DNA of 64,000 bases from Carpediemonas membranifera BICM (taxonomy: Eukaryota; Protista; Fornicata), in assembly GCA_019828565.1 (NCBI GenBank), contig JAHDYR010000002.1:1-64000 (forward strand), given 5' to 3'. Below the pieces are notes generated by a model. The model ran no database searches. It was not told the origin of the DNA and saw only the letters and a list, made by a program, of their open reading frames with translations. Positions 1 through 36,891 of the stretch are shown here, in pieces. A program made the position numbers and the translations under genes. The stretch's first letter is position 1. Every line of letters starts with the position of its first letter.

Positions 1-904
1 TTCTTGCTGCATTCTACGCAGTTTATGCACCAGCCAGCTTCTGCCGCAGCAATGACACAGCACCAAGAGCGTGGCACACACCCTTCAATGACCCATAGCA
101 GGTTGGGTGGGTCTTGGCGTCAGGCTGTTTTTCTTTTCAATCATTTCCAATCATATCCTGCACAGACTTCCGTTGATGAAGAAGTTCTGCTATGACGAAG
201 CCGGCTTGTCGCGACGAGAACTGGGCCATAGAACTGAAATCGGCATCCGAATATCGCGGCACGCATGGGTATTTACCCCCATGAAATGTTCAAAGTGTGT
301 TCGTGTTCGGTCATTCCGCCGTCAACGAGCGCCATACGAGACCTCCAAGCATACGCGCATGACTGCATCGGCTCTTCCCGCCTGTTCTTCATGTCGTCAC
401 ACCTGCCTCCGACATTTTACTCGTGCGGTGTAGTCATTGCTCTTTTACGGTCTCCCCAAGTCCCCCTTTGCCGCGAAGGTGACTGACATGGCGCAGATCG
501 ACAACAAGAAGAAGAATAAGATGCTGAAGCTTGGTAGCTTGCTGAACTGGTGCCACTTTCTATGGTGGGCAGTTGCAGTTGTCACGTAAGACACTCGGAA
601 CCGCTCAGAGATTGTCTCAACTTCGTGAACGTGAACTCTGCACTACCGATTCGCGGCACAACGCCACCCACTTGCCTCGGAATGTACGATCTGGCAAATG
701 CAGATGCTCCACTTCGACCCAACGAAGCGTCCCACTGCTGCCGAATGTCTTGACAAGCTCAAGGTCATCATGCGCGTGCATGAATGCGTCGCCAAGCCGA
801 GTCCGCTTCTGTTAGATGACACTGAACAGGTCTTACTCTCTGTAGATCAGCGAAAGAGAATGGTCGACTGCTGCCAACTGGGGGTCCTGGAGGAAAAAGT
901 TTAG
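1..904 (+). pseudogene. Ser/Thr protein kinase-like gene, C-terminal part, frameshifted and 5'-truncated by the window edge
   Basis: Joining frames across homopolymers gives YRGTHGYLP(H)EMF (subdomain VIII, ~254-290) and SDI(Y)SCGVV (subdomain IX, ~408-435). MLHFDPTKRPTAAECL (subdomain XI) is in ORF 698..904. Confidence 0.6.
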
Positions 905-1662
905 GTATGCGATTCGAAAGGGTCGTAGCATTGAACTCGAAACCATGAGTCCTAAGAACACCGGCGCATGCCCAACACTCACCCCCGGTGGCCTGGCCGT
1001 GGTTTGAACATATACCGACACATAACTGGGTAAATACGTAAATGTTGTGCGAAAAATTGCGTCTTGTTCTGCACAGAGCGATGACGAAACTAAAAACGGA
1101 ACAAGAAGAGGCCTGAAGATTTAACTGCCCGGCGGTGCAGGTTCGTCAAGTGGCCGGAGATGCCGCTTCCAGTAAGGTGTATGCCGTACAGCTCGCCGTA
1201 TCCATCTCCGTGCCCGTCTCCATCCCCCCACTCCGCCTTCAACGCCAGCCCCCCGCCACGCCTGTTGTAAGTCCGCCTCCATCTCCTGTCCGCAGTTCAC
1301 CACCGAGTCTCGAAATCGAATCACCTCACTACCATGATTCCCCGCAATACCATGATGTATGTGATGACCATTAAACGATCTCCTTCTATACAATGACTTC
1401 TGAAGCCGTCCGACCAACGGCACAGAACGGTTTATAGCATGCATATGATCCATTCTGGTGCCTTTATCCTCTATAACCAACATCAGTCCATCAAAAGTGA
1501 ATCTTGCAACAGAATACTCATCCACACGCATCGAGAACGAAAAAGAAGCATATAACCAACATCAACAACCTAATAGAAGGCTGCATGCAAGCGTAGAGCT
1601 CTCCTAGTCGATTCTTCAATTTATCAAGCATCAATCTCCACGTCAGGATGAAATCAGTGTTT

Positions 1663-1819
1663 AAAGCTCAGAGATGCCGTTATAGATGATATAACGACGT
1701 CTCTGAGCTTTTCAGCGATGTCAGTTTCTGGCCACGTCCAAGTTCGGCTCTGCGAAAATAACAGTGCATTGCACTATAAGTCATACATTTGGAATACAGC
1801 AATGCACTGTTATTTTCGC
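1663..1819. repeat. Two adjacent inverted repeats
   Basis: 22-bp arms at 1663-1684/1690-1711 (2 mismatches). Perfect 21-bp arms GCGAAAATAACAGTGCATTGC at 1752-1772/1799-1819. Confidence 0.85.
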
Positions 1820-2284
1820 CAAAACCACGCTGACCTACCATTGTCCATGGGCTTGACGGGGGTGATCTTCTCGGCTTGGATTTGGCTGAAACTTGGTATA
1901 TGTGTAGTATTTGATATGTTAGGACGGATCCAAGATTTTTTTACATATCGTTCGAGTCTATTTACCGAGATATACGTAAAGCAAAAAAATTAGGGTTGAG
2001 TCTATTCTGGCTGAAAAGCGGTATGGTGGGTTCTCTGACTGTCTGAACACGGCTCCAGAAGTTTTTACGTGATGAATTGGCATATTTATATTGCTTTGCG
2101 TAAACAGAAAAATTTTTGACAGTACCTACAATCAACTACCTGCATATACATGCTATAAACATGCTTAAAATGCCTTCAGTCGTACGTGCTATATACTAAA
2201 AGCTCTTCCTGCATCTTATTTCGAAAGAACAAAAATATTCACTCTGAAAAATAACACTGCATTGCTGTGAAATTTTGGAAAAAG

Positions 2285-3805
2285 ATGCTAGATATCACTA
2301 TTCTACGCAGCTGGATTCGTGAGCATCATGAGAAGACCGTTAGGATTGCTTCTGCTGCACCTGGTCAAGAGCGTAAGGCTATTCGAGCAGATAAGAGTAT
2401 GTTCGAGAGATGGTTCGCACTCCGGACGAATAAGAGCCGCTTGGAGCACCTCAAGGAGCACAAAGTGATAACGAAGACAGCCCCTGAGATGCGCGCTGGT
2501 CGATAACATCGTCATTGACGAGATTCGTGATGTGTTTGGTCTCGCTGGCCGAGTTTCACTAATGGATCTCATCAACAAGGCTTCCCTTCCCGAGCTCATG
2601 GCCATTAGTGACGACCTTGCCCGGCCCGAGCTGTCTAAGGTTCCTGCAGGCTTGTTTATGGAGGATGATCAGGTTGAAATCGTGCGGAAGCAGTTTTTTT
2701 GACCACTACACCGGATCAGCGATCACCTTTTGAGGATAACCGCGAGGCTGTCATGCCGTCACATCGTGGCTCTATTCATCTAGAAGGAACAGGCCGTCTC
2801 TTTCTTCCAGATCAAGTCAACCTGATCCTTCGCGCTCTCTTCGTCGCCCCTGAGGGCACTGTCGAGGCCCGCCGCGTGCATTCCCCCTACGAGGACATTC
2901 TTTCTGGTTGCAAGAATGATCCGGGAAGCGATGTGACATCAGCCCAGCTTGAGCGGTTGCGTCGAGATGTTGCCAAGGCAGCCGCCGAAGCTATTCAGGC
3001 AAGGAATGACCGCGAGGAAGCCATACACTCGCTTGAACTCGTTACTGCATCCTATGCGCAAGATACAGGGCATGCATATGTGACACCACCCGCCAGCGAC
3101 GCCGTGGAATTTTTCCGACACTGACGAGGACGAGTCCGATGGCCACGCTGAACCGGCCGCCATGCAGGGTGACGGCGTTCCTTTGCCCCAGACTGATCAA
3201 GACGTCGAAGTAGAGTCCGATGTGGACGACACAGACACCGTTGGTCTCCCAGACGGTTTACGATGTTGATGCAGAGGCCGATCATGACGTCCGCGAGCCA
3301 GTGTCCCTGCTTAATCACAGCTTAGCACAGCTAGACGACACCATTGCAGGCCTTGATGATGTACCCGAGTCTGTGCGCTTGTTGGAGCAGTACGAGCCCC
3401 TTGATGAAACGGCTTGCTGAGGAGAGGGAGGCGAGGGAGGCGCTTGAACAGGCTAACAGAGATTCTGAGGAGTCCCAGAAGAGACTAGAAGCTGAGTTAG
3501 GTCAGCAGAAGGGCGAGGATCAGGCGATCCATCAGTTTACTCAAGCAGAGTTGGCACGCGCGAGTGAGGCTGGGCTTGAAGCACTCGCCGATGAACTCGA
3601 AGACAACTGGGCGGAGCTTATCAGGCGCGCCGAGGAGGCAACAATCGAGCTTGACCGCTACGTTGCTCTCGCTGCCTTGATGGAACTGTTCCAGAGGAAC
3701 AATGTGGCTGGAGCTTTGTGGACTCGGATCAATAGCACCATGATGAGGTACGGGGGCCAGAAGTTCATAACGGTCCCACCCCCTAGACCTCGGTCTTACG
3801 CCTGA
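2285..3805 (+). CDS. Hypothetical acidic/coiled-coil protein, probably one ~500-aa gene split by frameshifts
   Basis: Successive same-strand ORFs 2267..2506, 2699..3124, 3220..3420 and 3344..3805, several breaking at T or C runs. E/A/R/Q-rich helical C-terminus. Confidence 0.45.
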
Positions 3806-4500
3806 GATGAAGGCTATCATCGCACAGCACTCTCGAGAGAAGAAGACAAAAAGCTCGTGTAACACAGGGAGAGAAGCTGGAGTTTCCCCTGGAAGGGCGT
3901 TCATGCTAGTGGAGCAGTTGAAGTAAATGGGCACGGCGACAGGGCGGAACAAGCAACCGCGAAATAGAGATATCAGGTCATCCCCTGACATTGTATGGCG
4001 AGAACTGTTCTCAGTCTCCCGCTTTGGGAGCTCTAAGATCAGTCTGAGATGAGTTACAGATGTCCACACGGTATTCGTCAAACTGAGCACTTCTCCAAAT
4101 GAAATGTACTCGTGCTGCTTTTAATGAGTCTTTGTTGTAGTCATAAAACATAAGCAGCACCAATTGCCTTCATTTTTGCCTGTTTCTGCCATTATTGATC
4201 TGCATATTGATTCCAAGCGACTATCTAAACAAAAGCGGCTTTGAATTTCTTCAACAATGCCAATTCCGCGCATAATGTCCGATGAAATGCTGACCACTTG
4301 TGATGCAGCTCCCTCAGGCGTTTCTAGATGTGGTTTCATTGGTTTCATTCTCAGTGACACCCTTTACATAATTCATTTACGTTATAAAACATATCGAACG
4401 AAATGAAGCAAGTGCCGAAAAAAAGAAGTCTCCTGGAACCTATCGCGCGTTCACTGGTCATGATCTTACTACAAATCTTTCAAAGATCACTTTTCGGGCC

Positions 4501-5636
4501 ATGTTGACATGCTTCTTTGTCATTGTCGATGATATCGACGTAGACAGTGGCCTCTCACTGGGAATGCCCAAAGACTCCGTGTTATCGGCCTATAACACTG
4601 TCGTGTCGAACTTGCTTGTCCCTGTGTACGGTGGTTTTGTTGCTTTGAAGAAGAAGAACTTCAACGAGAAGGGGTTGCTAGACTGGGCGAGAGATTTGGG
4701 TTATAAGCTCGGTTACACCAAGACTAAGCCGATCATCTACCACCAGTTGACGCCGAAAGAGAAGCCTAGCGCCAAGGATCTGTCAGTTTTCATGAAGGAG
4801 ATGGCGAATGTCCTCAGACTAGCCAACGCCCCTGATATGGACATCGAGAACCTGAAGAAGATGAAGTTCATCTTCCCGACAGGTCTACTTCTTGATGCCA
4901 GGCAAAGATATCACAAGCAAAGCGTGCAGACCAAAAAGGCTGAGGGGAGATGAACCCAGCTTTCCTGCGTCTCCAATCAAATCTGAGTCACTGCTCAACG
5001 ATAACAGCCTTCTTGGATCCATTAAGACTGAAAGAGATGCGAAGACTCCCGCTCGTGACTCTTCTCTGACAAATCCTTCGGTCCAACACCAAATGATCCA
5101 GGATCTTCACCAATACGTTGTTGGTGAACGAAAGTTCGATATGGCACATCAGCAAGAGCTGAAGCGTCCTACTGCTGATGACAGTGATGACAGTGATGTC
5201 AGCATTGCTGAGAAGACAGGTCCGCTGATTTCTTTCGATATGTTTATGCGTCAACTAGCATTTTGCTGCGGGCATTGCACTTCCCCGGATTGGTTGGGCA
5301 ATCCGGAGAACGAAACTGACTTCGCCCAGTGCGGATCATGCAACCGCTACTACCATGGGAGGTGCGTGAGGTGGCTCAGCAATGGGAAGAAGGCCATTAC
5401 CAATTTCACGTGTCCGGATTGTGCTGCTGCTTCTGAATGCACCCGCTGCAAGGCTAAGATCAAATCGTCAAAGGGAAGGGACTCTTTCTTCTGCAACATG
5501 TGCAAATCTTGGTATTGCAAGCCATGCGGTGTGGCCATGTGGGAGACCTCGATTGATGGAACCGTTGCCAGGTTCTTATTTTTGCCAGGTCTGCAAGGAA
5601 AGCCTCCTGGCACTGAATCCGAGTCTGGCATTGTGA
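4501..5636 (+). CDS. Double PHD-type zinc-finger protein, module 1 (frameshifted)
   Basis: ORFs 4501..4953 and 4892..5674. C4HC3 finger CGHC..CGSC..H..C..CPDC, then CTRC..CNMC..CKPC..CQVC (last pair after a T-run shift, stop 5636). N-terminus resembles ORF 45824..46141. Confidence 0.75.
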
Positions 5637-5848
5637 GAGTAAAGGAAGGAAGAAGCGATCCAGCCTTTATGTAATTTAATCACTTGCGGCTTATCTACAT
5701 ACAGCGGCCGGCCGGGGTTAGCCACTCACTGGGGTCAACATCATCCCACGGCAGCAAATTCGCTGCAGTAGATTGACTGTCGTCCCCGCTGGGGAAGGTG
5801 GGGAAGGTGTGGAGACGTTTCTATTACGCGTTTATTGGGCAATGTGGG

Positions 5849-7372
5849 TCAAACAACAATTTCTGCTGGTATTGGTTTCTCATACAACGGCATCCATGGA
5901 AGAGTTGGTGTCCACCGCAGAATATTGTTGTACGCGTACCACCGTTTGTTGAGTGGGTTGAACAGCCAGTAAGTGCTGGGGGACTTATCCATCAGTGTCA
6001 CTGCATATTTTGATGCCTCAAAGCGCGCAATAGCAGGAAACCCATGCGATTGTCTCGAAACCACAGTTTGTCTGCTCCCGCCGTCTACTCGCACATAGAT
6101 AAGGACGTTGTTGGGCAATAGCACAAACTTGGAAAGTGGGTACAACCTATACACCTCATGTTCGCTGCAAGGAATCGGGTTTGGGTCCAAAAATAGAGAT
6201 CGGACAATGTTGGGGATGAGTCGGGATCTACCGATGAGATAGCAATCATTGCCAGATCTAACGATCATAAACCTAGACTGTGCAACAAAGATGATTGCGT
6301 CGATCCAGACAGGTGTCCTCCTGAACCCCGGATGGGCGACATCCGTCATGTCATCAGCGGGAATATGACCAGTGGTATTACCGGTGAAGAACTGGGCTGG
6401 GACTATATTCTTTGTCTTGGATGCCCGGACCGTTCCGGACAAGATAACAAGTCCAGGCACGGCCCTGATCCCTCCAAGATTGACGGGAAGTTTCACCTTA
6501 GCAAACGAAGAGAATCGGTGAGTGAGGGCCACATCGTGTCCAAACCAAGCCATCATATTAACGCCATACTCCTGAGAAGGCGCTGTAACGAGCACCCCGT
6601 GCATTGTGTGCAACATGATGTAAGTGTTGCAGTGGCAGTCAAGAACAAATCGATGCCTGCACCACAGATGCATCTTGGCAAGCTTCTCAGCTATGGCTGC
6701 GGGGAAAACCGCCTGATGGACAGATGTAACACGAGCGAACCACAAGTTGCCAATGTAGAACGCCTTGCTGGTTGAGAAGAAGAAACACTTGCCATCAGAC
6801 CAGAACCGCATGATCCGGTGACGGAATGAACGATGATTGTCGTGGAAGACAAACCCACAATAATGCACGAGCTCTGATGCATCATAGCTCTTGATGACAG
6901 TCCGATCTCTCTTAGCAACACTATGTGAAAACATGAACTTCCTGCACATGAACCAGAGAGCGCTCGAGTCACCATCGGTCACCGTCCTCAGTATGGCCCA
7001 CAACGTCCCTTGTATAAGCGTGTGAAGACGGTCGGGCAGCGATTCGCCTTCGCGAAGCTGAACATCCATGCTTAGCTGTGGATGGCTTCGCAGTTTGATG
7101 ACGCGAGAGAGAATCCGGGCAACCTGCGATGCCTGATCCGAATTCTCAAGCTCTTGCGCGTGAAGACAAGCAAGCTGAAGCATGTCATCAAACGTCTCCA
7201 GGTCTTGAAAGATGTGATAGAAATGCGAACGCGCAGGGAACATAAAGAAGACCCTTGTGGCTTGTTCTAAATAGCCCGGCAGGTTGTTGGGCAAAGTTTT
7301 GCACAGGACACAAGAGTTCCAGTAAAGGTCACAAACACTGAGCGACAATTGTCTGTGATTAGAATCAGTCAT
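5849..7372 (-). CDS. Helical N-domain plus RCC1/BLIP-II-like beta-propeller protein, module 1
   Basis: Intact ORF, likely start MTDSNHR at 7372. LHTLIQGTLWAIL..ALWFMCRKF aligns with LFTLLQATVWAIF..PWWFACKMF of the 44491 paralogue, which has the RCC1-type motif WIAGDNTHGQLGVG. Confidence 0.6.
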   Translation of the reverse strand: MTDSNHRQLSLSVCDLYWNSCVLCKTLPNNLPGYLEQATRVFFMFPARSHFYHIFQDLETFDDMLQLACLHAQELENSDQASQVARILSRVIKLRSHPQLSMDVQLREGESLPDRLHTLIQGTLWAILRTVTDGDSSALWFMCRKFMFSHSVAKRDRTVIKSYDASELVHYCGFVFHDNHRSFRHRIMRFWSDGKCFFFSTSKAFYIGNLWFARVTSVHQAVFPAAIAEKLAKMHLWCRHRFVLDCHCNTYIMLHTMHGVLVTAPSQEYGVNMMAWFGHDVALTHRFSSFAKVKLPVNLGGIRAVPGLVILSGTVRASKTKNIVPAQFFTGNTTGHIPADDMTDVAHPGFRRTPVWIDAIIFVAQSRFMIVRSGNDCYLIGRSRLIPNIVRSLFLDPNPIPCSEHEVYRLYPLSKFVLLPNNVLIYVRVDGGSRQTVVSRQSHGFPAIARFEASKYAVTLMDKSPSTYWLFNPLNKRWYAYNNILRWTPTLPWMPLYEKPIPAEIVV

Positions 7373-7498
7373 GTTCCCCCTATAGCTGTTCTTAAACTGC
7401 ACTGCCAAAATGAGGTGGAGAAAATGGCATCGACATTTTTTTACGTAGGACCAATATAAACAGCGAAAAAAACGTAAAGGAAACAAAACTGGGAGGAC

Positions 7499-10069
7499 AT
7501 GCATATCTCCACACAAGCTACTTTGGTCATCTGGAGAATGACACCTTACGGTAACATTCTAGCACCATCAAGCGTTTCCGCCGTCAATGTCATTCTAGCA
7601 AACGTTTACACCTCGATCCAAGGACACCACGCTAATGGCATGGATCGACGGTTCCGTCAATGCGATAAGGATTCGCGTTCGTTGTTCAAGGCTGTCTTGC
7701 TATCTCTAACTGATGGTGATATTGACAAGAGCATTCTTGATCCTGTCTTTGTTTCCTTGCTTGATGGTAATACGGATCGTTTTCGACGTAACATATGTGC
7801 TACTGTCAGAGAGTACACACCAACATGGTCCCATGCCTTCTCACCTGCGTCGGACGAGAGAGATAGCTTGTGCGAGGACAACCACCTGCTACTCGAGAAG
7901 ATTGAGAACACCGAGCATGCATTTCAGTTCGCAATGGCGCTCAAGCGGATCACTGAAGGTGTCAATGTCGTTGATGATGAGGTTACTGTCTTTAACGCGA
8001 TCGCCAAAAGGCTGGGTATCCAGACCATGAAGTTTGATGTCTCACATTATGCTCTCAAAGACCTTGGGTGTGATATTAGGAACGTGTTCGGAGTGAAAGA
8101 AGCCATGAAAGATCACGAGGCAGATTTTTTTCGAGAGTCTTGTACCAGACGAGATACACTGTTCGCACAACACGTTTCGTTATGATCAAAACAACCAGAA
8201 GTTCCCTCTCGAACATACGACACGTTTCCCAATTGCAGCTGACGCAATAGGCTCCTTGCCGGTTCCGGTCAACAACTACTTACATGATGGAACGCACATT
8301 ACTATCTTCTTCAACAGCGAAGATGAACGAGATCAATGTGTCTCCATGCTTTCCCACCCTCAACCCCACCAAGTTGAAAAGCGATCGGTGGGCCTTTGTC
8401 AAGTCGGTTAAGTATAACATTTCCAGCCGTATTGCACGAGGCATTCAGTCACCACAGTATCTCGAGACAGCCAGAGATATTTGGTATGATACAACGACAC
8501 ATGTTAGCAGAGAAGCGCGTGTTGAAGCTAGCTACATTCCAGTTGACATTCTCATCTGGTTTGATGCATGGCGAGGGACTACGACCGCTGTCAAATTCAG
8601 GCTGATTGACATGACAGGAGAGGTCTTTCCGCAGAGAGTGACATCACCATTCAGACTGCTTGAGTACCAGGGAAAGGAGGATCTTTTGCCAACATACTTT
8701 GAGTATATTCAGTCTAACGTGGAAGAGGCAATCCAGAAGTCATTCCAAGTGCGAGAAACTGGAAGGTGGGCAAGAATCAACAGAGTATTGCTGATTGGTG
8801 ACCACCCCTGCCATGTCGACAGTTGTGGGCTCGCTGCAAGGAGGGCATTATCCATCGCCTTTCCAATCGAATAGTAAGCGAAACATGGGTTGGATGCCGT
8901 TTGGCGCCACGTTCCGGACCACACTTCAGCACGTCCTCCAAGCCAAAGAAGGTAGTATTGCTGAATCTACATCGGGTATTCCAGATCCTGCCGCGCACTG
9001 GGGCAGCTTTCTCCTGGCGACTGACCGAAGGCGTTCGTTGGAATACAGAAGAAGAAGGTTACGTCAAACTCTCTTTGAGGGATCGTCGATTGCTCCTGAC
9101 AGTGTGTTTCTTATCCCCCAATCATGCACTGTTGCCATCATTTCATGGGTCAGGTGGCCCTAATGGCGGGAATGTTCAAACCGCGGAATGACGGCTCACG
9201 AGAAGAGAACGCTCAGTGGGGACGTTATCTGCAATCTATCCAAGATTTCAAACCGCCAGATCGTACAACTGGGTGTAATGAGCATATGTTAGGCCGCAGG
9301 TTGATGGCCAACATGGCAACGACGTACTATCATGCGTTTCCTGTCTCTGTTCAGTCCATCTTCAGACTAATGGGATATCTTTTCTCCCATTATTACTCAA
9401 CTGCGACAGTGACGGAAGATATCGTGTGGTGGCATCGAGTTGCTGCACTGTTGGTCCACTTACTCCATGTAAGCCTCTCCTTGGTCACTGATAAGCCCAT
9501 CCCGGTTCCCACACCATCCGAGGCAAAAATCAATGCGGCCATTCACTCAGACGCTATATAGCAATGCAATTGTCGCAACCATTCCCGAGATACAAGCCGC
9601 AACAATGCTTCCTTTTGGTGTCATCATTGAGGAGTACTTCGAGAGAGACTTCATTGGCAACCAGGATGCTCGTGTACATTTGAGGAGGAACACAGTTCTG
9701 CAGCAAGTTATTCTGAGAGAACAAGCGGAGATGTTCTATCGGTTCCTGCGCGGTCCTGTATCTTATGGTCGACGTGAGGGCCACGTACCACTTCTTTCCC
9801 CTCTGATCAGCCTCCGAGTACACAAATGTTGCAAAGATCACGCTCAATGGATTCGTATTCAACAGGATATGACAGAAACGTTGCCAAAGTCTGATGTCAA
9901 CGATCTGAATAGAAAATTCGAGCAGAACGTCGCTCATTTGTGGGAAAGCATGCTGAGACGAGCGCGAAAGTCATGGAACAATGAAGACTGGCTGTTTATC
10001 AAGGTTCGGGATGATCGTGAGAACGGTGTTCGTCTTGACGTGTGTCTATGCAGAGAAGGCTGTCCATAA
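7499..10069 (+). CDS. RAG1/Transib-like DDE transposase, copy 1 (several frameshifts)
   Basis: Collinear with 46160..48757: IWFDAWRG (D at 8563), LIGDHP..GGHYPSPF (D at 8800), RTTGCNE, LYSNAIVATIP, FGVIIEEYFERDF (E at 9641). Confidence 0.7.
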
Positions 10070-10137
10070 ATCGTAGTTGTATTTAGCGGGGGAGACAATA
10101 ATCAACCACACGCCCGACCAAGCAGGAAAGTGACGCC

Positions 10138-10178
10138 CCTGGGATTGACGGGGGGAAACCCCGCATATTCCGGCAGCA
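10138..10178 (+). other. Conserved stem-loop downstream of the transposase stop
   Basis: CCTGGGATTGACGGGGGGAAACCCCGCATATTCCGG matches the minus strand of ~50692-50730, CCTGGGATCAATGGGGGCAACCCCACGTATCCCGG. Confidence 0.55.
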
Positions 10179-10661
10179 AAACTTCGCTGAAACGGAACCA
10201 CATAATTACTTGACTGATTTTGGATCTTAGAGAAGACTTGACGCGCATAAACTCAGGTTGATCGTCAAGATCTCCGAAAGGAACGCAACTGCTGCCTAAA
10301 TCACCTTTTTATCATTATTAGTCGGTTCAGCTTTTTTCTCGCAAGTCCGTCATCATTTCGTGACATAATCCGCGGGATCCGTAGCGAACGATGACTCCTC
10401 GGAAAAAAACACATAGTTGTGCTCTACACTTGACCTACATTCCAAATATTCACTTTGTTCTTTCCAACGGCTCAGTTTTGTCATGCGTTGACCGACCAAG
10501 AATGTGAGCGTACACTGACACTATTGGTTGCATGATGTGAAACATCGTGTATTGCGTACATGAACAAAGTTTTAAGCTGTTATGACTCGTATTCGTTGAG
10601 ATATGGCTGTTTGTTCATACGCCTAAAAATGCACACATGGTCAAATCTGTCGAAACAAAAA

Positions 10662-10797
10662 AGAATTGGGAATATCTCGGGAATGACACGTTGCCGTTTT
10701 TCAAAAATCGGGCAAGCCCAACGAATGATAGTATGGGATCGCCTGCATCATTTGCAAAAAAACGGCAACGTGTCAATCTCTAGATATCGCCAATTCT
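10662..10797. repeat. Subterminal imperfect inverted repeat with 40-bp arms
   Basis: Perfect core TGACACGTTGCCGTTTTT / AAAAACGGCAACGTGTCA with imperfect outer arms. Confidence 0.8.
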
Positions 10798-10940
10798 GCA
10801 TAAAAACTTTTTTTTGCAAGGCATAGAACTCTACACTGTGAGCACTAGTGTATTAGTGCTTGCAGAAGCGGTTACTTGAGTCGATGAAGTATACGCACAT
10901 GACATAATTAATTAAAACAGTTTAATATTGAGTGAGCCAC

Positions 10941-11038
10941 CAGGAATTTCCCTTATCCAATCAGGGAATTTCCTCGGGGGAAAGCCCGAGGAAATTCCCC
11001 TACCCAATAAGGGAAATTCCTGCACCCTGGACAGTATG
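10941..11038 (-). mobile_element. Right end (type c) of a CATACTGT-family DNA transposon
   Basis: Ends ...GACAGTATG at 11038, identical to the last 9 bp of the TSD-verified end at 41844. Four GGAAWTTCC palindromes centred 23, 45, 70 and 92 bp from the end. Confidence 0.75.
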
Positions 11039-13141: not shown

Positions 13142-13799
13142 TCAGTCATTCCATCTGTCGTCAGGGGTATCCAGATCGGACAGGGAGATGGGTCTTTTCA
13201 GACTCTGCATCCCCGCTTCGTGCAGGATACGGTTCGCGTGCCTGACTGTCATGGGGGACTACCCCAGAGCGAATCAAGGTCCTTGGACATCCAGATAAGG
13301 GTCTCAAAGGCAGGGTGATCCACGGCAGCCTCTTGCATCAACTCCTGTAGCGCGGGTCTAAGTCACGTAGGTCTGCGACATACGATCCCAGCCGGCAGAG
13401 AGCAACGACTAGGGCGAGCTGACGGTGGGACTCGGCAATGTCGTACTTCAGAGCACCCGTGAGCTTGTCGTACTCTTCCTCAGTCAGCACCTGGCGTGCC
13501 GGAAGCGTGTGAGTCCTTATCCTGCAAATTAGGTCGGTTTCGGCACCAGCAGTGCGAAGAAGGCGAACGAGAGCCTGTTGAGGCATCGAGATGGACTTGT
13601 ACCGTCCAAAACGGCAACAGAAGGACAGAGAGTCCAGAAACTGTTCGAATACGTCACTATTTTGTCGGATCTCTGTGATAATAACAACATCAGCATCCTC
13701 ATCGTCGCACTCAAGGTAAACGCACAGTTTTTGATATGTCTGCTTGTATTGCTCCTTCGTAGAGCGCTTCAGTCCCTCTAGAGCGTGCTTCAGCAGCAT
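13142..13799 (-). CDS. Degenerate tyrosine-recombinase-like protein (frameshifted)
   Basis: STKEQYKQTYQKL (core-binding-like), LTEEEYDKL, ALCRLGSYVADL at the GxRxxEL position, and after frameshifts ANRILHEAG..PISLSDL at the HxLR position. Catalytic residues are absent. Confidence 0.4.
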
Positions 13800-14800
13800 T
13801 TCGATCGAGATTAAAAATCACCCGAATTCTAGCTCTGTTCTGGCCGCTGCAGGCACCGCTGGGCGCGATAGAGCTCGGAGCGGCGTTGTCTGCCAAAAAG
13901 AGCATATTGCTCCCGGTGAAAATTGAACCCACGATCTGGAGGCTGTGTACAAAGTCTCTTCCCTCTATGCCACGACTTATGGGAAATCCGCCCTTATTAA
14001 TCTCCCTACAGGGAATATAGGCCATTTTGGAGGTATGAGCGACCGGGAGGGGGGAGATTGGGGGACATTTATGGTATGGCTGGACTCTACTCGGGCAGAC
14101 TATTATAACGAGGCTCAGACCATACCTCTACGGCCGCTATACGAGGAGAAACGAGCCAGTAAGGGCACTAGCGGCCCATGGCCGCAGCAGCGCCCAGCCA
14201 AACTCAGCTATAGTGTCACCTGAGGCCCCAAATGACGTGCTGATCAGGTCGACTCCCATCTATTGACTTGGTAATTGCAGAGGGCGTCTGAACGCGATGT
14301 CCTAATAACCGACTTGGTCGGAGCGGTTCGGCGATGACTCCGTTGTATTCCACACCTTCTTCTGATGCCGAAACATGCAGTCCTTTATAGTCAACGCGCG
14401 TCCTGTCCGTCAGGCATGAAGGGCATTCAGCAGAGGCATTGCTGCGGTCTGCAGGCCGCCCTAGCGCTTCAGGATGGCCAACTGCATGATCTGGACCCAT
14501 GTCTATCAAATCCATTTTGATCACATCAAACGTGTGTCAAATCCGGCAAATCGATTTTGCGATTAAAAAAGGGGCAGAGGGGAGGAAGCGACCCATAAGG
14601 CGTACCTATGGACCATTTCCTCCCCCCTGCCCGTTTTTTGAGTCTCAACTCTCAATTCCAATTTGTCCCTATGTTACTTTTTTCTAGCAGGATTAAAAGT
14701 TTGATACTGCGCATGCGTATTGCTTAGGTATAGCCAAGTACTACCATACCACTTTGAAGATCCAGCTCCGGCTCATCGTCGAGTTCATTTTTTCTTGCAA
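13762..14800. repeat. ~1.04-kb subterminal segment, inverted copy of 32722-33758; the end-proximal ~280 bp also recur after 52920 and 56863
   Basis: Direct sequence match. ORFs 14216..14524/32997..33305 and 13945..14223/33255..33575 are near-identical. Confidence 0.9.
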
Positions 14801-14803
14801 CCG

Positions 14804-14877
14804 TAGATAATCTAGGTTTTTTAGGCCCTAGATTATCTAGAAAAAATCGTAGATTATCTACCGACTTTCACAGTATG
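14804..14877 (-). mobile_element. Right end (type b) of a CATACTGT-family DNA transposon, abutting gag of element D
   Basis: Ends ...CACAGTATG at 14877. Three TAGATWATCTA palindromes centred 23, 44 and 69 bp from the end. Confidence 0.8.
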
Positions 14878-16970
14878 GAGGCGCACGAGGCGCGTGACAG
14901 ATGGGCTAAGGAAGGTTGCAAGGGGAGGTAGTTGGAGATTGAGGGCTCTCGCTTGAACTTGGTAGTGATCGACGTCGTCCTGGAAGGTGAAGAAGGCAGA
15001 ACGCGTAAGCGATCGCAAATACGGGATGGTGATGCCAAAAGACTGCATGTAGTATCGATACTGTGCTTGGTTTGGCCTTGAAGGGAACTTTCCAATTAAT
15101 GGATGAGAACTGATTTACTCCTGGAAACCGCAGTGGTGAAAATGGTCAAAAACCAAAACCTTAAACTGCGCCTCTGTGACGGGCAGGGGACAGGAACACC
15201 GAAGGGAAACGATGAACTAACTTTAAATTGACTTTGACGATCATTGACCAATCATAAAAAGAACTGATTGGGACAGCTAACACAACGTGACACTGCCTCC
15301 ATGAGTGGGCATAGGCCGTCTATGTTCGTAGGGGGTTCAATTGGGGTCGCCATTCGGCCCCTCATCAATTGATTCAGAAGGATGGTGGTGAACTCGCATG
15401 GTGGAAAATCTGTCCGGATACACGCAAAATCATACAACGAACCGCTAAGTAACTAATCAACATCATTATTCTTGAACGGCGTCGTGTTCCGCATCATTCT
15501 CAACGCAAAGCACACAATACAAGAGCCGCACTTGCAAATCTGCGGTTTCTGCCTCCGCAATGAGAGATGTGGAGTATTATTAAGTAGATGACGACAACTA
15601 GAGAGCTTTACGGGCGCTCTTCATCTTCTTGAGCAATTGGGGATGCTCAGCAAGATAGTCGTCAAGGGCAGCGAGCTTGTCGAGGTCTCGGGTATAAGGC
15701 TCCCAAGTTGCCTCACTATCGTCGTAGCCGTGCCAGAGCACGTGGAATTGGAGGTTCCTCTGCCTCCAGCGGTGGGCGTCAACTCCTCGGACGACATACT
15801 CGTTGTGCAGGCGGGCGGCCCATCGTTGCAGCTCAGCATCTGTATATGACCCCTTAAACGTATAAAGAGAGTCTGCGTGCGCTGTGACGGTTGCAAGAGT
15901 TGTCAGGTCCCTGAGGGTGTAGACGTTAGGGTGGTCGCCAGGTGAGAGGACTCGCATAGGGCCTCGGATGATAGGGCCAACGGGCGTGTCTCGCCGGAGT
16001 AGAACCGCTGCGCCAACGATTGGTGCGTGCGTCTCCGAAGGGGGCTCACGTGACACTGCTGATCCTTGGTGGGCCTGAAGGGCGAGGAGGGATGAGCGGA
16101 AGTGCTCGAGGGAAATAGGGGAGTCATCGGTCGCGTTGTTGGTCGTGTGGAGCTGCTTGCCGAAGAGAGCAGCGTTGGCTGAAAAGGCCGCTGTACTCAT
16201 AGGGGATGTCGTTGAGCAGAATCACTGTGTTGGGGACTTCCTCAGGCCAGCTCCTGCCTGATTCAAGGGTAAAAGCCTTCAAATGGCGCTTGATCTCGGC
16301 GTTGCGTCTTTTCAACTACACCACGGCCTGCCGGGTGATAAGCTGTACGGAGTTTATGCCTAATGCCATTCTCGGCCACGAATGACTTGAATGCCTGGGA
16401 AGAGAATCCGGATGCGTTGTCAGAGACGATAGCTTCGGGTATTCCATAGTGTTTGATCCAGTGTTCTAAAGAGTTGATGACCTCTGCTGTCGAGGTCGAC
16501 TGTGTCGGGTACACTTGGGTGAGCTTAGAGAATGTGTCAACTACGACTAGTGCGTGCCGGAGTGAGGGGTGACCATCTAGCGGACCAATGTGGTCCATTT
16601 GTACCACTTGGAAGGGGTATGCCCCAGCCAATGCATGCGGGTGCTGGCTGACGGGTTGAACGTTCAGACGGGTGAGCTGACAGACTGGGCACTCACTTAC
16701 CCATTGTTGGACGTCTTTGTGGAGACCCGGCCAAGATTGTCCCGCATTCGCGATGCGTCGGCAGGTGGCGCGAACACCGAGGTGTCCTGCTGAACCGCCA
16801 TGGTGTGCCTTGAACGTCTCGCGCTTGTTGAGCGATGCTTCTGCAGTGCTCACATGGACTAGGCGAGATAGCGTGTCAGCGACGGTGTTCTCTTGACCAG
16901 GGATATGGACGAGGTCGAAGTCGAACTCATTCATCGCCAGCGAATGACTTTGGCGTTGGTGGATTTGTGG
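14878..16970 (-). mobile_element. Ty3/gypsy family D fragment: RNase H end, integrase, chromodomain, PPT, LTR (15062-15292), palindrome (15052-15061) and gag start (15048)
   Basis: HH..CPVC, MDHIGPL, SDNASGF, and chromodomain FHVLWHGYDDSEATWEP. PPT GGAGGCAG then TGTCAC..GCACA, then GTATCGATAC and ATG of MQSFGITIP. Confidence 0.85.
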
Positions 16971-18047
16971 GCAAATAAGAACCAGTCTGCAGCACTCATC
17001 CGGATCTTGAAGTGCCACGAAAGTGCCACTATCCGACGATCCCATCGCAAAGGCAATGGCCGAAAACGGGGCAGAGACAAACGTCGACATCATGGAAGTC
17101 ACAGTTGTTTGGCCATTCGAGGCCAACACAACATAAGACGCGTTCATGGCGAAGCTACAGGCACCAGTAGGAATGGAGAGACTCTGGAAGGTGCATGTTT
17201 CCTTGCCTGCGAGATTGAACGCGGTCCTGAGGCATCTAGGTGGATCGCCAGCATAAAGCAACCTAGAAACAGAGTGAATCACATTACACTTGTCTGACGA
17301 GAAGATGAGACGGTTAATCTCGACGTCAGATGGCATGAACTCTGTCAATGAGGCATTACTCCCAACTCCGAGCTGCCCATGAGTGTTATCACCAGCAATC
17401 CACTGCTTTGCTTTGATGCGAAAGACAACAAAACGATCAAATGCGTCAATTGCCGTCGGATTCAGCGAGTGAATGCAGCTGAAGCTAGCGTAATCACAGT
17501 GACTAGTCCTCCAAAACCATGTGCCCGAGACAAATATGCCTTCACTACAGCTCAAGAGCACATACTTTCTCAGCAGCTGTAGACAGGTGATGTTGACGAA
17601 CTTCCATGGCGGATAGTTACGGCAAACCTCACTGACAGAATGGAAGAACCTGACTCGATGGCAATGGTAATACGAGTCAATCCAGGTTAACCCTCCAGCT
17701 GTGATCCCGTAGCACCTCATCTCATCGTAGTAAAACTGAGGGAAGAAATGGCCGGCGACTCTAAGTTTGAGCGTGTCTCGCTTCGCGAAACAAACCCCCC
17801 GAAAGTACAAGAGAGTACCGCCGTAACAAGGGTGTTGTGCTGTCTCTCTCTTGGTGGTATGAAACTGGAGGAAGAACATCTTGCAGGCAAACCACCAGGG
17901 GCTCTCATCACCAACACCCGCCTCCATAAATATTGCCCAGACTGTCGCTTGAAGAAGCGTAAAAAGCGTGTGGGGCAAATGGGCATCTGCATCCGGGTAG
18001 TTGATCGTAAATGACGCATGCTCTGATCGGAGCATAATCTCTATGCG
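15687..18047. repeat. 2.36-kb direct duplication of 41845-44203; 14880-15688 likewise matches 31838-32645
   Basis: Near-identical sequence and shared ORF translations. Confidence 0.95.
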
Positions 18048-21000
18048 GTTGGTTCGCTCTTTCCACCATCCCATTGGCCTGAGGATGGTACGCGGTGGTG
18101 ATATGCTGCTGGAACCCCACCTCTTGCGATAGTCGTCGGAATAGGCCATTGTGAAACTCAGATCCGCCGTCTGACTGGAGTACTTGCGGCGCTCCATATC
18201 TTAGGACCCAGGTATTGATAAAGGCCTCGGCTGCTTCTTTTCCGGAGTTGCTCTTGGCAGGGACTAATTCAGTCCAGCGAGAGCACATATCTACCATGAC
18301 GGTAATATACGAGTACCCGTCACAGGACGGCAAAGGACCCATCGTGTCGATTGCCACGCGTTGTAGTGGGGTGTCAACAGCTGTGTGGAGACCGTCGGGT
18401 TGGTCGACCGGCGGCCGATCGAGGACTTGGCAGATCGGACAGTCGGATACGACCCTATCAACTGCATCGCGTGAGACTGACAGTCCTTGGCCACGGAGGC
18501 GCTCGATCGTAAGACGTCTCGACAGGTGGACGTCGGCGAACAAGTGAGCTTGGTGAATCTGTTCGGTCGTTGCTGTCTTCTTGGCCATGGCAAACACCCT
18601 AGACAAACCGTCAGCGGCACCGTTATCGAGACCGGGAACGTGGGAGATAGTGAAATCGAGATCGGCGATAGAATCGGCCCAGCGCCTGACCTTAGCGTTG
18701 ATCGACTTATACATATAGAGCAAGTTACGGTGGTCGGTCTTGATCTCGAAGCGCTCCCAGCACAAGAACTTGCGCCAGGCCTGGAGCGCGGACACAATGG
18801 CGTACGCCTCTTTTCACCAACACTCCACCGCGACTGTACATTATTAAATGCCTTCGATAGATAGCAGACGGGCTTGCCGTCTTGGAGGAGAACCGCTCCG
18901 TATCCCACGGCGGAAGCGTCAGTCATAACAACGTGTGGACGCGTGGCGTCGAAGATCGCGAGTGCATCCGCGGAGCAGAGGGCGGCTTTCGCGTCTTCTA
19001 GTGCTTTGGAGACGTCAGCGCTTGTAGAACTCGTCTTACCGGACATTGCATCCGTTATAGGCTTGACTCGCTCGGCGAAGAAAGGGATATGATCGCGGAA
19101 GTAGTTCAGGAACCCGTGAAGGGCCTGGAACCCTCTTGTGGACTTCGGGACTTTCAACTGTGCTATATCTTCAACACGCTGAGGCGAAATGCGAACCGTA
19201 CCATTGTGGATGATCCACCCCAAGAATTCAACTTCGGCACAGTCGAACTGGCACTTATCCCGACCCAGGTGGAGTCTCATCTTTTCGACTCGGGCCATCA
19301 CTCGCTCTAGGTTATCCAGATACTCTGCCTCAGAGTCTCCCATTACAATAATGTCATCAATATAGATAATGCAGGAAGCTCCGACCAGACCCTCGAACGC
19401 AGTCTCCATCGCGCGCTGGAAATAAGCCCCAGCGTTCCGCAGGCCAAACGGCATGCGAGTGTACTGATACTGTCCGAAGACAGTTCGGAAGGCCGTTAGG
19501 TGGCGACAACGCTCGGTTAGCGCGATTTGGTGGTAACCTGCTGCAAGGTCAAGAGTGGCGAAGATCCTCTTGCGACTCAATTGTGCCAAGATCTCGTCAA
19601 TGCGAGGAATCGGATAGTCAAACGGCTCGGTCAAGGAGTTAATTTCCCGGAAATTGACCACGAACCGCGTCTTCTCACCCTTCTTGGGGACAACGATCGT
19701 CGGGCTAGAATACTCAGACTGACAGGCCTCTATGAAGCCTTTTGCAAGCAAGGTGTCAACGTGCTCCTTAACGATGGGGACCTTAGGAGGAGGCACAAAG
19801 TATGGACGGACGTTCACGACCTTGTTTCCCTTGATCACCAGGTCGTAGGGGTCTAGTAGGCTAGGCGCATCACGCTCTTTGAAGTTGGAGGCGTATCGTC
19901 GAAGTATAGACGACTGTCGGTCGCGTGCCTCTTGGGACAGCTCGGACATGGCTTGTGCGATGTATTTCGTGGCCGGTGGGGTCTCACTAGAGTCCTCAGT
20001 CGGGTCGGAGGAGCTGGGAATGGCGCTTGGCAAGAGTCCGAGACTTACCATCTGAGGAAATCCGATGATGATGTCGAACGCAGTGTCTATCACGTAGGCG
20101 CGCGAATTTTGAATCCGAAACAGAATGAACACACCGACGCTGATTTACTCCCTTCTTGGTAGGGCAGTAATCGGCCAGGTGTCCTGACTTGTGGCACTTA
20201 GGGCAGAATGCCTTCGGCTCAGCGCACTTGAAAGACGGATGCCCGGGCTTACCGCAGTTGTAGCACACGTACTGCTTCTTGGGCTTGTTCTGACGGTTGG
20301 GCTTCACTATGGGCTTCGAACCTTGGCGTTCGTGGCGCTCCGAGGGATCTTGGTGGTCACTGCGTGGCTCGCGCTCGTGAACATGTGGAGCTCTGGGACG
20401 GGCAGCAGCGGGGGAGAAGGAGTTCACCATCTCTTGCGACTCCTGTTGGTCGCGTGACATTGCCATGACTTTCGGCATGATCGAGGGGATGTCGAGGCCT
20501 TCTGCGAGCTCCTTGACCTTGTACATGATCGTGTTGGATCCTTGCACGCGGAAGCATCTGCAGTACGTCTCTTTGAGCACATCCTCAGGTACATCTGGAT
20601 TGACTAACAGCTGGAGCGCCTTGAACTTCCGATTGACGTTATTGACCTCGACGGGGTCGAAGGTCTTGGCGCGTAGACGGAAAAGATCGAGCTGAGCGGT
20701 GGATCTGCTGGGACGCAGTACGCTGCCTAGGCGCTTGAGGATTCGTAGATCGCTGAAGTTGCGCTTTTGACGGCGGCGCTCGGTAGTTGCCATCAGTAAC
20801 GGTACGTAATCATCGTCTTCGGAGTTACCGGCCTCGTCGATGCATTGCGAGACATAGTCAGCGATAGATGGATCGACGAGTTCGGAGATATCGGCCTTAC
20901 CGCCGAGGGAACGGTACGTTTGGAGGTGAAGGTAAAAATCAAGCAACGCCTTCATTGAAGGGTCGCGGAATAGCGGGGGAACCGCTTTTTCTTTGTTCTT

Positions 21001-31841: not shown

Positions 31842-32645
31842 CACGAGGCGCGTGACAGATGGGCTAAGGAAGGTTGCAAGGGGAGGTAGTTGGAGATTGA
31901 GGGCTCTCGCTTGAACTTGGTAGTGATCGACGTCGTCCTGGAAGGTGAAGAAGGCAGAACGCGTAAGCGATCGCAAATACGGGATGGTGATGCCAAAAGA
32001 CTGCATGTAGTATCGATACTGTGCTTGGTTTGGCCTTGAAGGGAACTTTCCAATTAATGGATGAGAACTGATTTACTCCTGGAAACCGCAGTGGTGAAAA
32101 TGGTCAAAAACCAAAACCTTAAACTGCGCCTCTGTGACGGGCAGGGGACAGGAACACCGAAGGGAAACGATGAACTAACTTTAAATTGACTTTGACGATC
32201 ATTGACCAATCATAAAAGAACTGATTGGGACAGCTAACACAACGTGACACTGCCTCCATGAGTGGGCATAGGCCGTCTATGTTCGTAGGGGGTTCAATTG
32301 GGGTCGCCATTCGGCCCCTCATCAATTGATTCAGAAGGATGGTGGTGAACTCGCATGGTGGAAAATCTGTCCGGATACACGCAAAATCATACAACGAACC
32401 GCTAAGTAACTAATCAACATCATTATTCTTGAACGGCGTCGTGTTCCGCATCATTCTCAACGCAAAGCACACAATACAAGAGCCGCACTTGCAAATCTGC
32501 GGTTTCTGCCTCCGCAATGAGAGATGTGGAGTATTATTAAGTAGATGACGACAACTAGAGAGCTTTACGGGCGCTCTTCATCTTCTTGAGCAATTGGGGA
32601 TGCTCAGCAAGATAGTCGTCAAGGGCAGCGAGCTTGTCGAGGTCT
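31842..32645 (-). mobile_element. Family D second copy: chromodomain end, LTR 32020-32249, palindrome 32010-32019, gag start 32006 (gag continues at 21296-21156)
   Basis: Duplicate of the 14.9-15.7 kb segment. Removing element B restores the reading frame SVTRLVRLRVPIDDIPDGDLF. Confidence 0.85.
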
Positions 32646-34257
32646 CATACTGTCAATTCCTTGACTTCAAGTCAAGTTTTTGTGACTTAAAGTCAAGGAC
32701 AAAACTTGACTTTAAGTCATTTTGCAAGAAAAAATGAACTCGACGATGAGCCGGAGCTGGATCTTCAAAGTGGTATGGTAGTACTTGGCTATACCTAAGC
32801 AATACGCATGCGCAGTATCAAACTTTTAATCCTGCTAGAAAAAAGTAACATAGGGACAAATTGGAATTGAGAGTTGAGACTCAAAAAACGGGCAGGGGGG
32901 AGGAAATGGTCCATAGGTACGCCGTATGGGTCGCTTCCTCCCTTCTGCCCCTTTTTTATCGCAAAATCGATTTGCCGGATTTGACACACGTTTGATGTGA
33001 TCAAAATGGATTTGATAGACATGGGTCCAGATCATGCAGTTGGCCATCCTGAAGCGCTAGGGCAGCCTGAAGACCGCAGCAATGCCTCTGCTGAATGCCC
33101 TTCATGCCTGACGGACAGGACGCGCGTTGACTCAAAAGGACTGCATGTTTCGGCATCAGAAGAAGGCTTGAAATACAACGGAGTCATCGCCGAACCGCTC
33201 CGACCAAGTCGGTTATTAGGACATCGCGTTCAAACGCCCTCTGCAATTACCAAGTCAATAGATGGGAGTCGACCTGATGAGCACGTCATTTTGGGCCCCA
33301 TGTGACCCTATAGCTGAGCTTGGCTGGGCGCTGCTGCGGCCATGGGCCGCTAGTGCCCTTACTGGCTCGTTTCTCCTCGTATAGCGGCCGTAGAGGTATG
33401 GTCTGAGCCTCGTTATAATAGTCTGCCCGAGTAGAGTCCAGCCATACCATAAATGCCCCCCATTCCCCCCCTCCCGGTCGCTCATACCTCCAAAATGGCC
33501 TATATTCCCTGTAGGAAGCTTAATAAGGGCCGATTTCCCATAAGTCGTGGCATAGAGGGAAGAGACTTTGTACACAGCCTCCAGATCGTGGGTTCAATTT
33601 TCACCGGGAGCAAATAGGTATTTTTGGCAGACAACGCCGCTCCGAGCTCTATCGCGCCCAGCGGTGCCTGCAGCGGCCAGAACAGAGCTAGAATTCGGGT
33701 GATTTTTAATCTCGATCGAAATGCTGCTGAAGCACGCTCTAGAGGGACTGAAGCGCTCCTCGAGGCGCCAATGAATGGAGATAGATCGTGTTGTTCGCGT
33801 TTACTTTGAATACTGCAGCAATAATGGAGATAATGAGATTTGCCGGGAACTGCAGACGAATTCCCTCACTAACTAGCCTGGAATCGTGATAAAGCTCCTA
33901 CATGATCACTCTGCATGCCCCAGAAGCATTGTACGCATGCTCAGAACCGCTTGAGCTGATGTTGGGCTGCTCCGCAGGATAAGGGATGATCGCTCATGGA
34001 CGTCTGAAAGCAGATCCTGGACGATAGAAGAGACGAAGAGAACACGTAAACATTTACATTCATTGCGACGCGTATGCCAGCTGGGTTGGCACTGGCGACA
34101 TCAACGCAGACTTCGCCATCGCTGTCGGTGGTAGGCGAGTCGTTGATGTTGTTAGGGAGTGATGTGGATGATGGAACTTGCTGTTGAGGGCGCCGGTGAT
34201 GCGGGGCTGGCGTGGCGCTGAGGGCGCTGGCGTAGGGGTGCTGTGTGGGCGCTGCGA

Positions 34258-34488
34258 TGAGGGCGCCAGGAATGAGGCGCCAGGGATGAGGGCGCCAGAG
34301 ATGAGGCGCCAGGGATGAGGCGCCAGGATGAGGGCGCCAGAGATGAGGCGCCAGAGATGAGGCGCCAGGACGAGGGCGCCAGGACGAGGGCGCCAGGATG
34401 AGGCGCCAGAGATGAGGCGCCAGGATGAGGGCGCCAGGATGAGGGCGCCAGAGATGAGGCGCCAGGATGAGGGCGCCAGAGATGAGGA
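34258..34488. repeat. Tandem repeat of a 13-15 bp unit GGCGCCAG(A)GATGA(G), about 16 copies
   Basis: Direct reading. Confidence 0.95.
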
Positions 34489-34499
34489 GTACAGTATTA

Positions 34500-34845
34500 G
34501 AACCCCGAAAACGCCATAATACCAACACCAATGAGCTTCATCAACGAAGATATGCTCACTGGTGCCGGTTATGGCGTTTTCGGGGTTCGTCGATCATTCT
34601 GCTCCCAAATCTGCACCTGAATTTTCGTGAGCATGCCCGGGAGCTATGCCTGACGAGTGATACCGCAGGGACCACGCTCAGATGCTCAGCCTCTGCCAGG
34701 CGGCACTCGTTTGAATTCTGCACGAAAAAAAATCAGACGACGAATGATGGGCAAAGGGCCGCGAAAACGCTGTAGTACCAGCGCAAGTAGAGTATTTTGC
34801 AATAAAATAGCTTACTTGCGGTGGTGCTGGCGTTTTCGGGGCCCC
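34500..34845. repeat. Two related inverted repeats
   Basis: Perfect 20-bp arms at 34500-34519/34569-34588, and an imperfect related pair at ~34756-34845. Both contain CGAAAACGC. Confidence 0.85.
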
Positions 34846-34850
34846 AATAT

Positions 34851-35075: not shown

Positions 35076-35106
35076 AGAAGAGACAATGGCTATTTCTGGA
35101 ATCCAA

Positions 35107-36890: not shown

Positions 36891-36891
36891 C

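Follow-up and report, generated by a model that had tools for sequence, protein, structure and literature searches.

RAG1 is the enzyme by which antibody genes are put together. RAG2 is one protein, made of a six-bladed kelch domain and a C-terminal PHD finger, and RAGL elements with RAG2-like genes have been described from animals and from one alga. The origin of RAG2 and the need of a RAG1-type nuclease for a chromatin-reading partner are open questions. Transib, RAGL and RAG duplicate 5 bp of the target site (target-site duplication, TSD) and have heptamers that begin with CAC (PMC10462144; PMC9435367). Kojima (2025) places EnSpm/CACTA, Mirage, Chapaev, Transib/RAG1, Plavaka, ESTA and Lanisha together in the CMCT clade, whose features are CA..TG termini, TSDs of 2-5 bp and C(2)C and H(3-4)H motifs, and HHpred similarity links the transposases of this type to RAG1 (PMC12730594). 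Here we analyse a stretch of 64,000 nucleotides from the metamonad protist Carpediemonas membranifera BICM (GCA_019828565.1, contig JAHDYR010000002.1, positions 1 to 64,000 of the forward strand; this whole stretch is called the window below), which holds near its left end a PHD-finger gene, an RCC1-family gene and a large transposase gene, together called module 1. We consider it probable that module 1 is the right end of a giant, recently active transposon of the CMCT clade, with a RAG1-fold transposase, a conserved PHD partner and an RCC1 gene as cargo.

The three genes had been noticed as a cluster in a first-pass annotation of the window, and all of them are present at 4403-10069, the last two head-to-head with their ATGs at 7372 and 7499, that is, 126 bp apart. 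The same annotation had placed a transposon end about 970 bp after the transposase gene, and actually the right terminus, ...ACAGTATG, lies at 11038, 969 bp past the stop codon at 10069. Regarding the extent of the module, drawn at 4501-11038, the right end was correct, but these positions cover only the right 6.5 kb of an element of about 16.7 kb. Window positions 1-11038 (+) are the rightmost 11 kb of a single copy of a transposon carrying terminal inverted repeats (TIRs), whose left 5.7 kb or so lie beyond the contig start, since the paired ends of other copies are 16.5-16.9 kb apart (on C67, C54, C27, C50 and twice on C68) and the likeness to these copies continues leftward past the window start. 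The genome comprises 24.2 Mb in 69 contigs, named C1, C2 and so on here, and left ends and left flanks of elements were read from pattern matches.

The genome holds around 12 copies of the module-1 element, which differ mainly by single-base homopolymer indels; the copies on C27, C39, C54, C67 and C68 are 98-99% identical to window 1-11038 over 11 kb. The right subterminal repeats (of the GGAAATTCC type, with a 38-nt near-palindrome) and the TIR ending in ACAGTATG occupy 10941-11038 (+), and the genome contains 22 occurrences of the 22-nt end CATACTGTCCAGGGT(T/G)CAGGAA, against none in the reversed control. The rest of the element contains further open reading frames (ORFs) of 541, 302, 285 and 488 aa without Pfam matches, and a gene like orf488 is common to both species, Carpediemonas and that of a second genome in which relatives were found. 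The element is apparently a cut-and-paste, multi-gene and recently active one. A host gene cluster was considered in place of a transposon and is ruled out by the TIRs, the TSDs and the multiple near-identical copies.

The transposase gene of module 1 (7499-10069, +) is split in the window over five overlapping frames. Compared with the intact 855-aa copy on C39, it shows no substitution and five one-base indels, all of them in homopolymer runs. The PHD-finger gene (about 4403-5636, +) presents the same pattern: window ORFs 4501-4953 and 4892-5674 belong to a single gene broken over two frames, which differs from the intact 409-aa ORFs of the C54 and C67 copies by homopolymer indels only, without substitutions. 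Because the differences are of this kind, the frame breaks in both genes are probably errors of the long-read assembly, and the idea that the window copy is a dead pseudogene was ruled out on the same grounds. These homopolymer "frameshifts" suggest that assembly errors affect the gene models of this assembly. Furthermore, at least 54 matches to the 873-aa transposase of a second module of the window (module 2, described below) are present in the genome, and many of them are intact ORFs of 840-880 aa. They form several subfamilies with around 30-37% mutual identity, and inside a subfamily there are several copies without any difference.

For the transposase of the intact copy (855 aa), AlphaFold gave, from a 36-sequence alignment, a confident model with a predicted local distance difference test score (pLDDT) of 85.6 and a predicted template-modelling score (pTM) of 0.80. 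When this model was compared with the PDB by Foldseek, ranks 1-49 were occupied only by RAG1, amphioxus BbRAGL and HzTransib (E 4e-9 to 6e-3), rank 50 being noise, and the fold search in the ESM Atlas found RAG1 clusters at a template-modelling score (TM) of 0.65. The RAG1-like enzyme that had been proposed from the letters of the window alone is borne out, in its predicted fold, by the Foldseek check. According to the model, the protein is a DDE transposase organised in several domains like the RAG1/Transib core, its predicted parts being dimerisation and DNA-binding helices, a pre-RNase H domain, an RNase H domain, a helical insertion and a C-terminal domain.

The predicted catalytic DDE triad consists of D355, D434 and E710/E711. 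D355 is placed in beta-1 (model strand 344-357) and D434 directly after beta-4 (model strand 422-433), and each of them is kept in 35 of the 36 family members. E710/E711 open a helix (711-727 in the model) and are kept in 28 of the 29 members that cover that position; from them to the end of the RAG1-aligned region the distance is 46 residues, and E962 of RAG1 is just as far from residue 1008. A domain of around 80 residues, RRM/ACT-like, at residues 223-304 has no counterpart in RAG1. Past the RAG1-aligned core, the C-terminus of the transposase (window about 9820-10069) carries a conserved H-x-C-C (774-777) and a terminal C-x-C (848-850), which by analogy could form a zinc-binding tail, in a loose parallel to the cysteine-rich tails found in RAG1L and Transib.

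Regarding the termini, the elements end in conserved 5'-CATACTG...CAGTATG-3' and carry family-specific subterminal repeats; termini of the form CATACTG(T/C) were found in four Carpediemonas subfamilies and in the second genome. The length of the TSD is established by a non-autonomous relative of 9.2 kb at 32646-41844 (+), which has CATACTGT ends as in the module-1 group and is inserted in a gypsy chromodomain with CT on each side, because this filled site can be compared with empty ones: five other gypsy copies show the uninterrupted site GGT-CT-CGGG, and a paralogous empty site, 99.8% identical, lies at window 15687-15689 (within 14900-18047). The TSD is therefore of 2 bp (CT). For the 879-aa subfamily, 10 different flanks were seen after the element end ACAGTATG, the end pairs are 20-28 kb apart, and 4 of the 7 pairs on the same contig have matching dinucleotides (CT, CA, TC and GC). 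In the second genome, locus L041 holds an element of 11.6 kb with 74-nt TIRs starting CATACTGCCC and GC on each side. The group is defined by the CATACTG heptamer and by a 2-bp TSD without sequence specificity.

Some further observations on these elements can be recorded here. The paralogous sites belong to a segmental duplication of around 3.1 kb, 99.8% identical (14900-18047 versus 31858-32646 plus 41845-44203), in which the element of 9.2 kb with CATACTGT ends sits in one copy, while the second copy is the empty site. The 879-aa-subfamily elements of 20-28 kb were mapped at C1:550976-578545, C39:43119-66691, C67:693227-715960 and C67:130642-153379, and such a distance between matching ends is very large for cut-and-paste transposons. 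The TIR of this subfamily is also found on derivatives of 0.1-0.75 kb that resemble miniature inverted-repeat transposable elements (C13:68039-68781, C56:71615-72367 and C55:47266-47377), and at window 14857-14877 it caps a body of around 1 kb (13762-14877).

By its termini, its 2-bp TSD and its fold, we read the module-1 family as an undescribed, new deep lineage of the CMCT clade and file it as such. The family is RAG1-like in fold and is not a member of Transib/RAGL, because the 5-bp TSD and the CAC-initial heptamer both fail. We know of no solved structure of any CMC transposase, and therefore the fold search cannot place the family nearer to Transib or to CMC. The earlier suggestion of an undescribed protist cut-and-paste family agrees with the TIRs, the 2-bp TSDs, the roughly 12 copies and the lack of a sequence match to a named family.

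Several results weigh against this placement. The Pfam scan of 36 members of the transposase family returned nothing even at E 10, and the family profile had 0 matches among the PDB sequences at the same E value. Of the zinc motifs that mark CMCT/RAG1, C(2)C and H(3-4)H, neither is evident in the copies from Carpediemonas: after D434, where C-x2-C is expected, these read 'GGHYPSPF'. Cys stands in that column in 10 of the 36 members, some distant members among them, and C-x2-C itself in a single distant member. The motif H543-x2-H546 (PPIMHxxH) is conserved, with a spacing and position that are unlike H(3-4)H in a comparison by sequence. Finally, 5 of the 7 same-contig end pairs of the module-1 family do not have a matching TSD, and only the other two do (TC and GG). 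The mismatched pairs include copies that have one flank in common and the other flank different, and it is plausible that the mismatches come from ectopic recombination or misassembly between near-identical repeats of 16.7 kb.

A different reading of the same enzyme is that it belongs, as a divergent member, to a superfamily that already has a name, Mirage being the likeliest, since Mirage makes 2-bp TSDs in the Repbase classification, or else to a CMC lineage such as ESTA or Lanisha; the family would then seem new because Pfam and the PDB lack such profiles. We hold this to be unlikely, although it is the strongest of the alternatives. The best TM per target in the ESM Atlas, 0.73 over 295 residues, was obtained with a nematode DUF1280 cluster, a domain that we take to be linked to Mirage, and clusters of the CACTA-type Transposase_21 were reached at 0.50-0.53. 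None of the 36 members, however, matches Pfam Transposase_21, Plavaka or RAG1 even at E 10, and the C2C/HxxxH motifs just discussed are not evident. The 2-bp TSD and the CA..TG termini do lie within the CMCT range (PMC12730594), but a search of 1.84 billion representative proteins with the family profile gave only 37 matches, 17 of them strong, from Carpediemonas, assembly GCA_002919055.1 and metagenomes, and no Pfam transposase domain was found on any of them. The Pfam and PDB sequence searches with the window transposase ORFs gave no match either, and the homologous-protein search with the 873-aa transposase of module 2 gave nothing useful.

The PHD-finger gene is the neighbour that accompanies this transposase most regularly. 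The C-terminal part of its product, around 110 aa, contains a C4HC3 PHD finger and a second zinc module and looks like a double PHD finger. Six homologues keep C288, C291, C309, C312, H317, C336 and C339 without exception, and every one of them also has the sixth C4HC3 ligand, a Cys soon after the His. The Pfam PHD model gives these proteins 18-23 bits against a cut-off of 24. With the profile of the PHD family, KAT6A and DPF3 are matched at their double PHD fingers (E 1.3e-5 to 1e-4), and BPTF and PHF2 (PHD matches overall E 1e-5 to 1e-3) and MLL are matched as well, and the protein-atlas search with the PHD protein gave a weak lead (0.79) to PHD-containing clusters.

When the 409-aa protein was searched by tblastn, a PHD homologue was found directly upstream of the transposase and in divergent orientation in L002-L016 and L020-L024, that is, in almost every transposase locus that was fetched. 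In the second genome a homologue lies inside the TIR-delimited L041 element, and another is found on L042, around 9.5 kb upstream of the transposase; on the metagenome contig L047 it is head-to-head with the transposase. Because this neighbourhood is found for nearly all the subfamilies, for the second genome and for a metagenome contig, we regard the PHD gene as a real conserved partner of the transposase, usually transcribed divergently from it. From this association we infer that its product may be an accessory transposition factor, which could couple the transposase to chromatin or to the element ends.

Genes of other kinds were observed as cargo beside the transposase, on related contigs and elements of the second genome and of a metagenome: at L041:5349-7181 (-) a 610-aa gene with an OTU-protease-like GDGNCF motif and no Pfam match, and at L044:1451-1942 and L047:1577-2620 genes for GNAT acetyltransferases.

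The first-pass annotation had also seen the same three genes again, strongly diverged, at 43-48.8 kb, and this second module is indeed there. Its transposase gene (46136-48757, +) is an intact 873-aa ORF present as a single copy and 32% identical to that of module 1. The PHD-finger gene (44958-45809, -) codes for 283 aa, with a Pfam PHD match at E 9e-5 and 28% identity to the module-1 protein (E 1e-14). The third gene, of the RCC1 family (43082-44491, -), is truncated by a gypsy integrase (41756-43081) and fused in frame with it, and the resulting 911-aa ORF has rve, Integrase_H2C2 and Chromo domains in its C-terminal half. One RCC1 repeat can be recognised in the module-2 RCC1-family protein, at E 0.007-0.044 and below the cut-off, and the homologous-protein search with this protein gave nothing useful. 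No inverted repeats of at least 20 nt were found in 41845-64000. Module 2 may be an old, immobile copy. A partial duplicate of its RCC1-family gene, 100% identical, lies at 16845-18050, inside the segmental duplication, and directly downstream of the module, at 48770-49771 (-), there is an intact 333-aa transposase ORF of the Tc1/mariner type (DDE_3 E 1e-26, with HTH domains).

The RCC1-family gene of module 1 lies at 5849-7372 (-), within an ORF that extends to 7516; the product has 507 aa from the ATG at 7372 (555 aa for the whole ORF). It had been described as a propeller, RCC1-like and not kelch. Its paralogues have RCC1 matches and no kelch signal was seen in the Pfam scans, but the module-1 protein itself had no match in the Pfam scan and no RCC1 (PF00415) repeat. 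With the 555-aa protein, the homologous-protein search found only its own annotated copy, the protein-atlas search gave a weak lead (0.78) that was F-box-like, and the AlphaFold model, made from a 3-sequence alignment, had a pLDDT of 32, too poor for fold assignment.

Among the matches listed, residues from about 50 to 300 of the module-1 protein match about 60 dispersed ORFs of 500-600 aa, and the C-terminal half of the module-2 protein matches about 60 further ORFs; none of these listed matches is near a transposase match. Since the above-cut-off matches of a genome-wide RCC1 (PF00415) scan sit in the very ORFs matched by the two proteins (for example at C9 217 kb, C13 265 kb, C1 1101 kb, C2 152 kb, C15 62 kb and C8 763 kb), both element genes are to be assigned, by sequence, to a host family of at least 100 members with an N-terminal (helical) domain followed by RCC1 repeats. 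In Carpediemonas an RCC1-family gene was seen beside the transposase in modules 1 and 2 only. Because the family is a dispersed host one and was seen at the transposase only there, the gene of module 1 most likely represents cargo that was taken over from a large family of host genes. The proposal that the enzyme has its propeller and PHD partners encoded as separate genes thus holds for the PHD gene, which is conserved beside the transposase, but probably not for the propeller; transposase copies without this neighbour, together with a family dispersed over the host genome, were found for the propeller gene and not for the PHD gene.

It could still be argued that the locus encodes a RAG2 equivalent in pieces, where a propeller of the RCC1 type binds the transposase and a separate PHD protein reads histone tails, the three forming a functional trio that either converged on RAG1-RAG2 or is its ancestor. 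In favour of this, the enzyme has a RAG1-like fold, the PHD module resembles the double PHD fingers that read histones, and the three genes stand together in two lineages with transposases of only 32% mutual identity. Nevertheless, we consider this trio quite improbable. The propeller family is a dispersed host expansion, and most of the transposase copies have the PHD gene and not the propeller gene directly upstream; moreover, among the matches listed, which are lower bounds, there is no RCC1-family match inside the four mapped 20-28-kb elements of the 879-aa subfamily. The versions of modules 1 and 2 are not mutual closest relatives: they have in common only the N-terminal region of around 170 aa (25% identity, E 7e-11), and the module-1 gene scores 78 bits to host paralogues versus 50 bits to the module-2 gene, which suggests that they were captured separately. 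The C-terminal half of the module-1 protein has no RCC1 signal, and its model is the poor one given above.

Also in favour of such a trio, the second genome has on L042 a genuine gene with RCC1 repeats (Pfam E 1.7e-25), placed between its PHD gene and its transposase gene. However, the contig was searched for element ends and none were found, so the RCC1 gene may be outside the element. The idea that this gene is an orthologue of the Carpediemonas one was dropped, as hhalign gives only 2% probability to homology between the N-terminal-domain profile of the Carpediemonas family and the L042 protein. In its evolutionary form, the argument would be that a RAG1-fold lineage outside Transib/RAGL recruited, independently or ancestrally, both RAG2-like halves as separate genes, namely a double-PHD reader and, in some lineages, a propeller of the RCC1 type. 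This is doubtful to the same degree; if true, the partnership of propeller, PHD and RAG1-fold nuclease would be older than the Transib/RAGL split, or else a solution that was repeatedly favoured. Finally, a P-element-like enzyme instead of a RAG1/CMCT-like one is hardly credible, because P elements are absent from the 49 significant Foldseek matches, fewer residues align (349 versus around 440 for RAG1), no THAP domain was detected in the Pfam scans of the window ORFs and of the 36 members, and P elements make 8-bp TSDs while the TSD here is of 2 bp.

Returning to the CMCT-clade transposon with a RAG1-fold transposase and a PHD partner, its transposition might proceed as follows, by analogy with RAG1, Transib and CACTA. 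A dimer of the transposase would bind the subterminal repeats and cleave at the heptamer using D355, D434 and E710. Integration of the elements gives a 2-bp TSD that is not sequence-specific, and the PHD protein, as suggested above, might provide the contact with chromatin or with the element ends.

Regarding the assembly, many module-1 copies abut contig ends (C3:1, C39:1, C4:355, C42:922 and C24:1063), and flanking dinucleotides match across contigs; for example, the right flank AT of the window copy is the same as the left flank at C1:1866512. These observations, with the mismatched end pairs given above, suggest that the module-1 repeats break the assembly or recombine ectopically. Several contig breaks in this assembly would be accounted for by them.

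The family described here would thus bring a RAG1 core fold that sequence searches do not detect into a metamonad protist, where it is consistently paired with a PHD gene. It would provide a second, independent system for asking in what way a histone reader serves a transposase with the RAG1 fold, and a RAG1-fold enzyme with a conserved PHD partner bears on how partnerships of the RAG1-RAG2 type arise. The CMCT clade would gain a deep lineage with a conserved CATACTG heptamer and 2-bp TSDs, and a genome of only 24 Mb is found to contain unusually large (16-28 kb), apparently active cut-and-paste elements with cargo genes.

Compared with RAG1, RAGL (ProtoRAG) and Transib, the family differs in many respects: it has no detectable sequence similarity to them, its TSD is of 2 bp versus 5 bp, its heptamer is CATACTG versus CAC(A/T)(A/G)TG, with only CA..TG in common, and there is no evident set of C2C/H(3-4)H zinc ligands. 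Furthermore, the enzyme has an RRM/ACT-like domain that is extra with respect to RAG1, its partner is a separate PHD protein without kelch, usually in divergent orientation, and the elements reach 16-28 kb with many genes. With the CMCT lineages it has in common the CA..TG termini, a TSD within 2-5 bp, the RAG1-like fold and the multi-gene organisation with chromatin-related cargo, which is TET/JBP in fungi and PHD, GNAT and OTU-like genes here; it differs from them in that it gives no Pfam signal of Transposase_21 or Plavaka, and its host among the Metamonada and its conserved PHD partner are not among the clade features that we found in PMC12730594. Regarding RAG2 and RAG2L, the PHD and RCC1-family proteins are encoded here by separate genes, no kelch signal appears in the Pfam scans, and conservation of the RCC1 gene does not extend over the whole family. 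As in RAG2 and RAG2L, a PHD finger is encoded beside a RAG1-fold enzyme, and in two lineages a gene of a beta-propeller family (RCC1) is adjacent as well.

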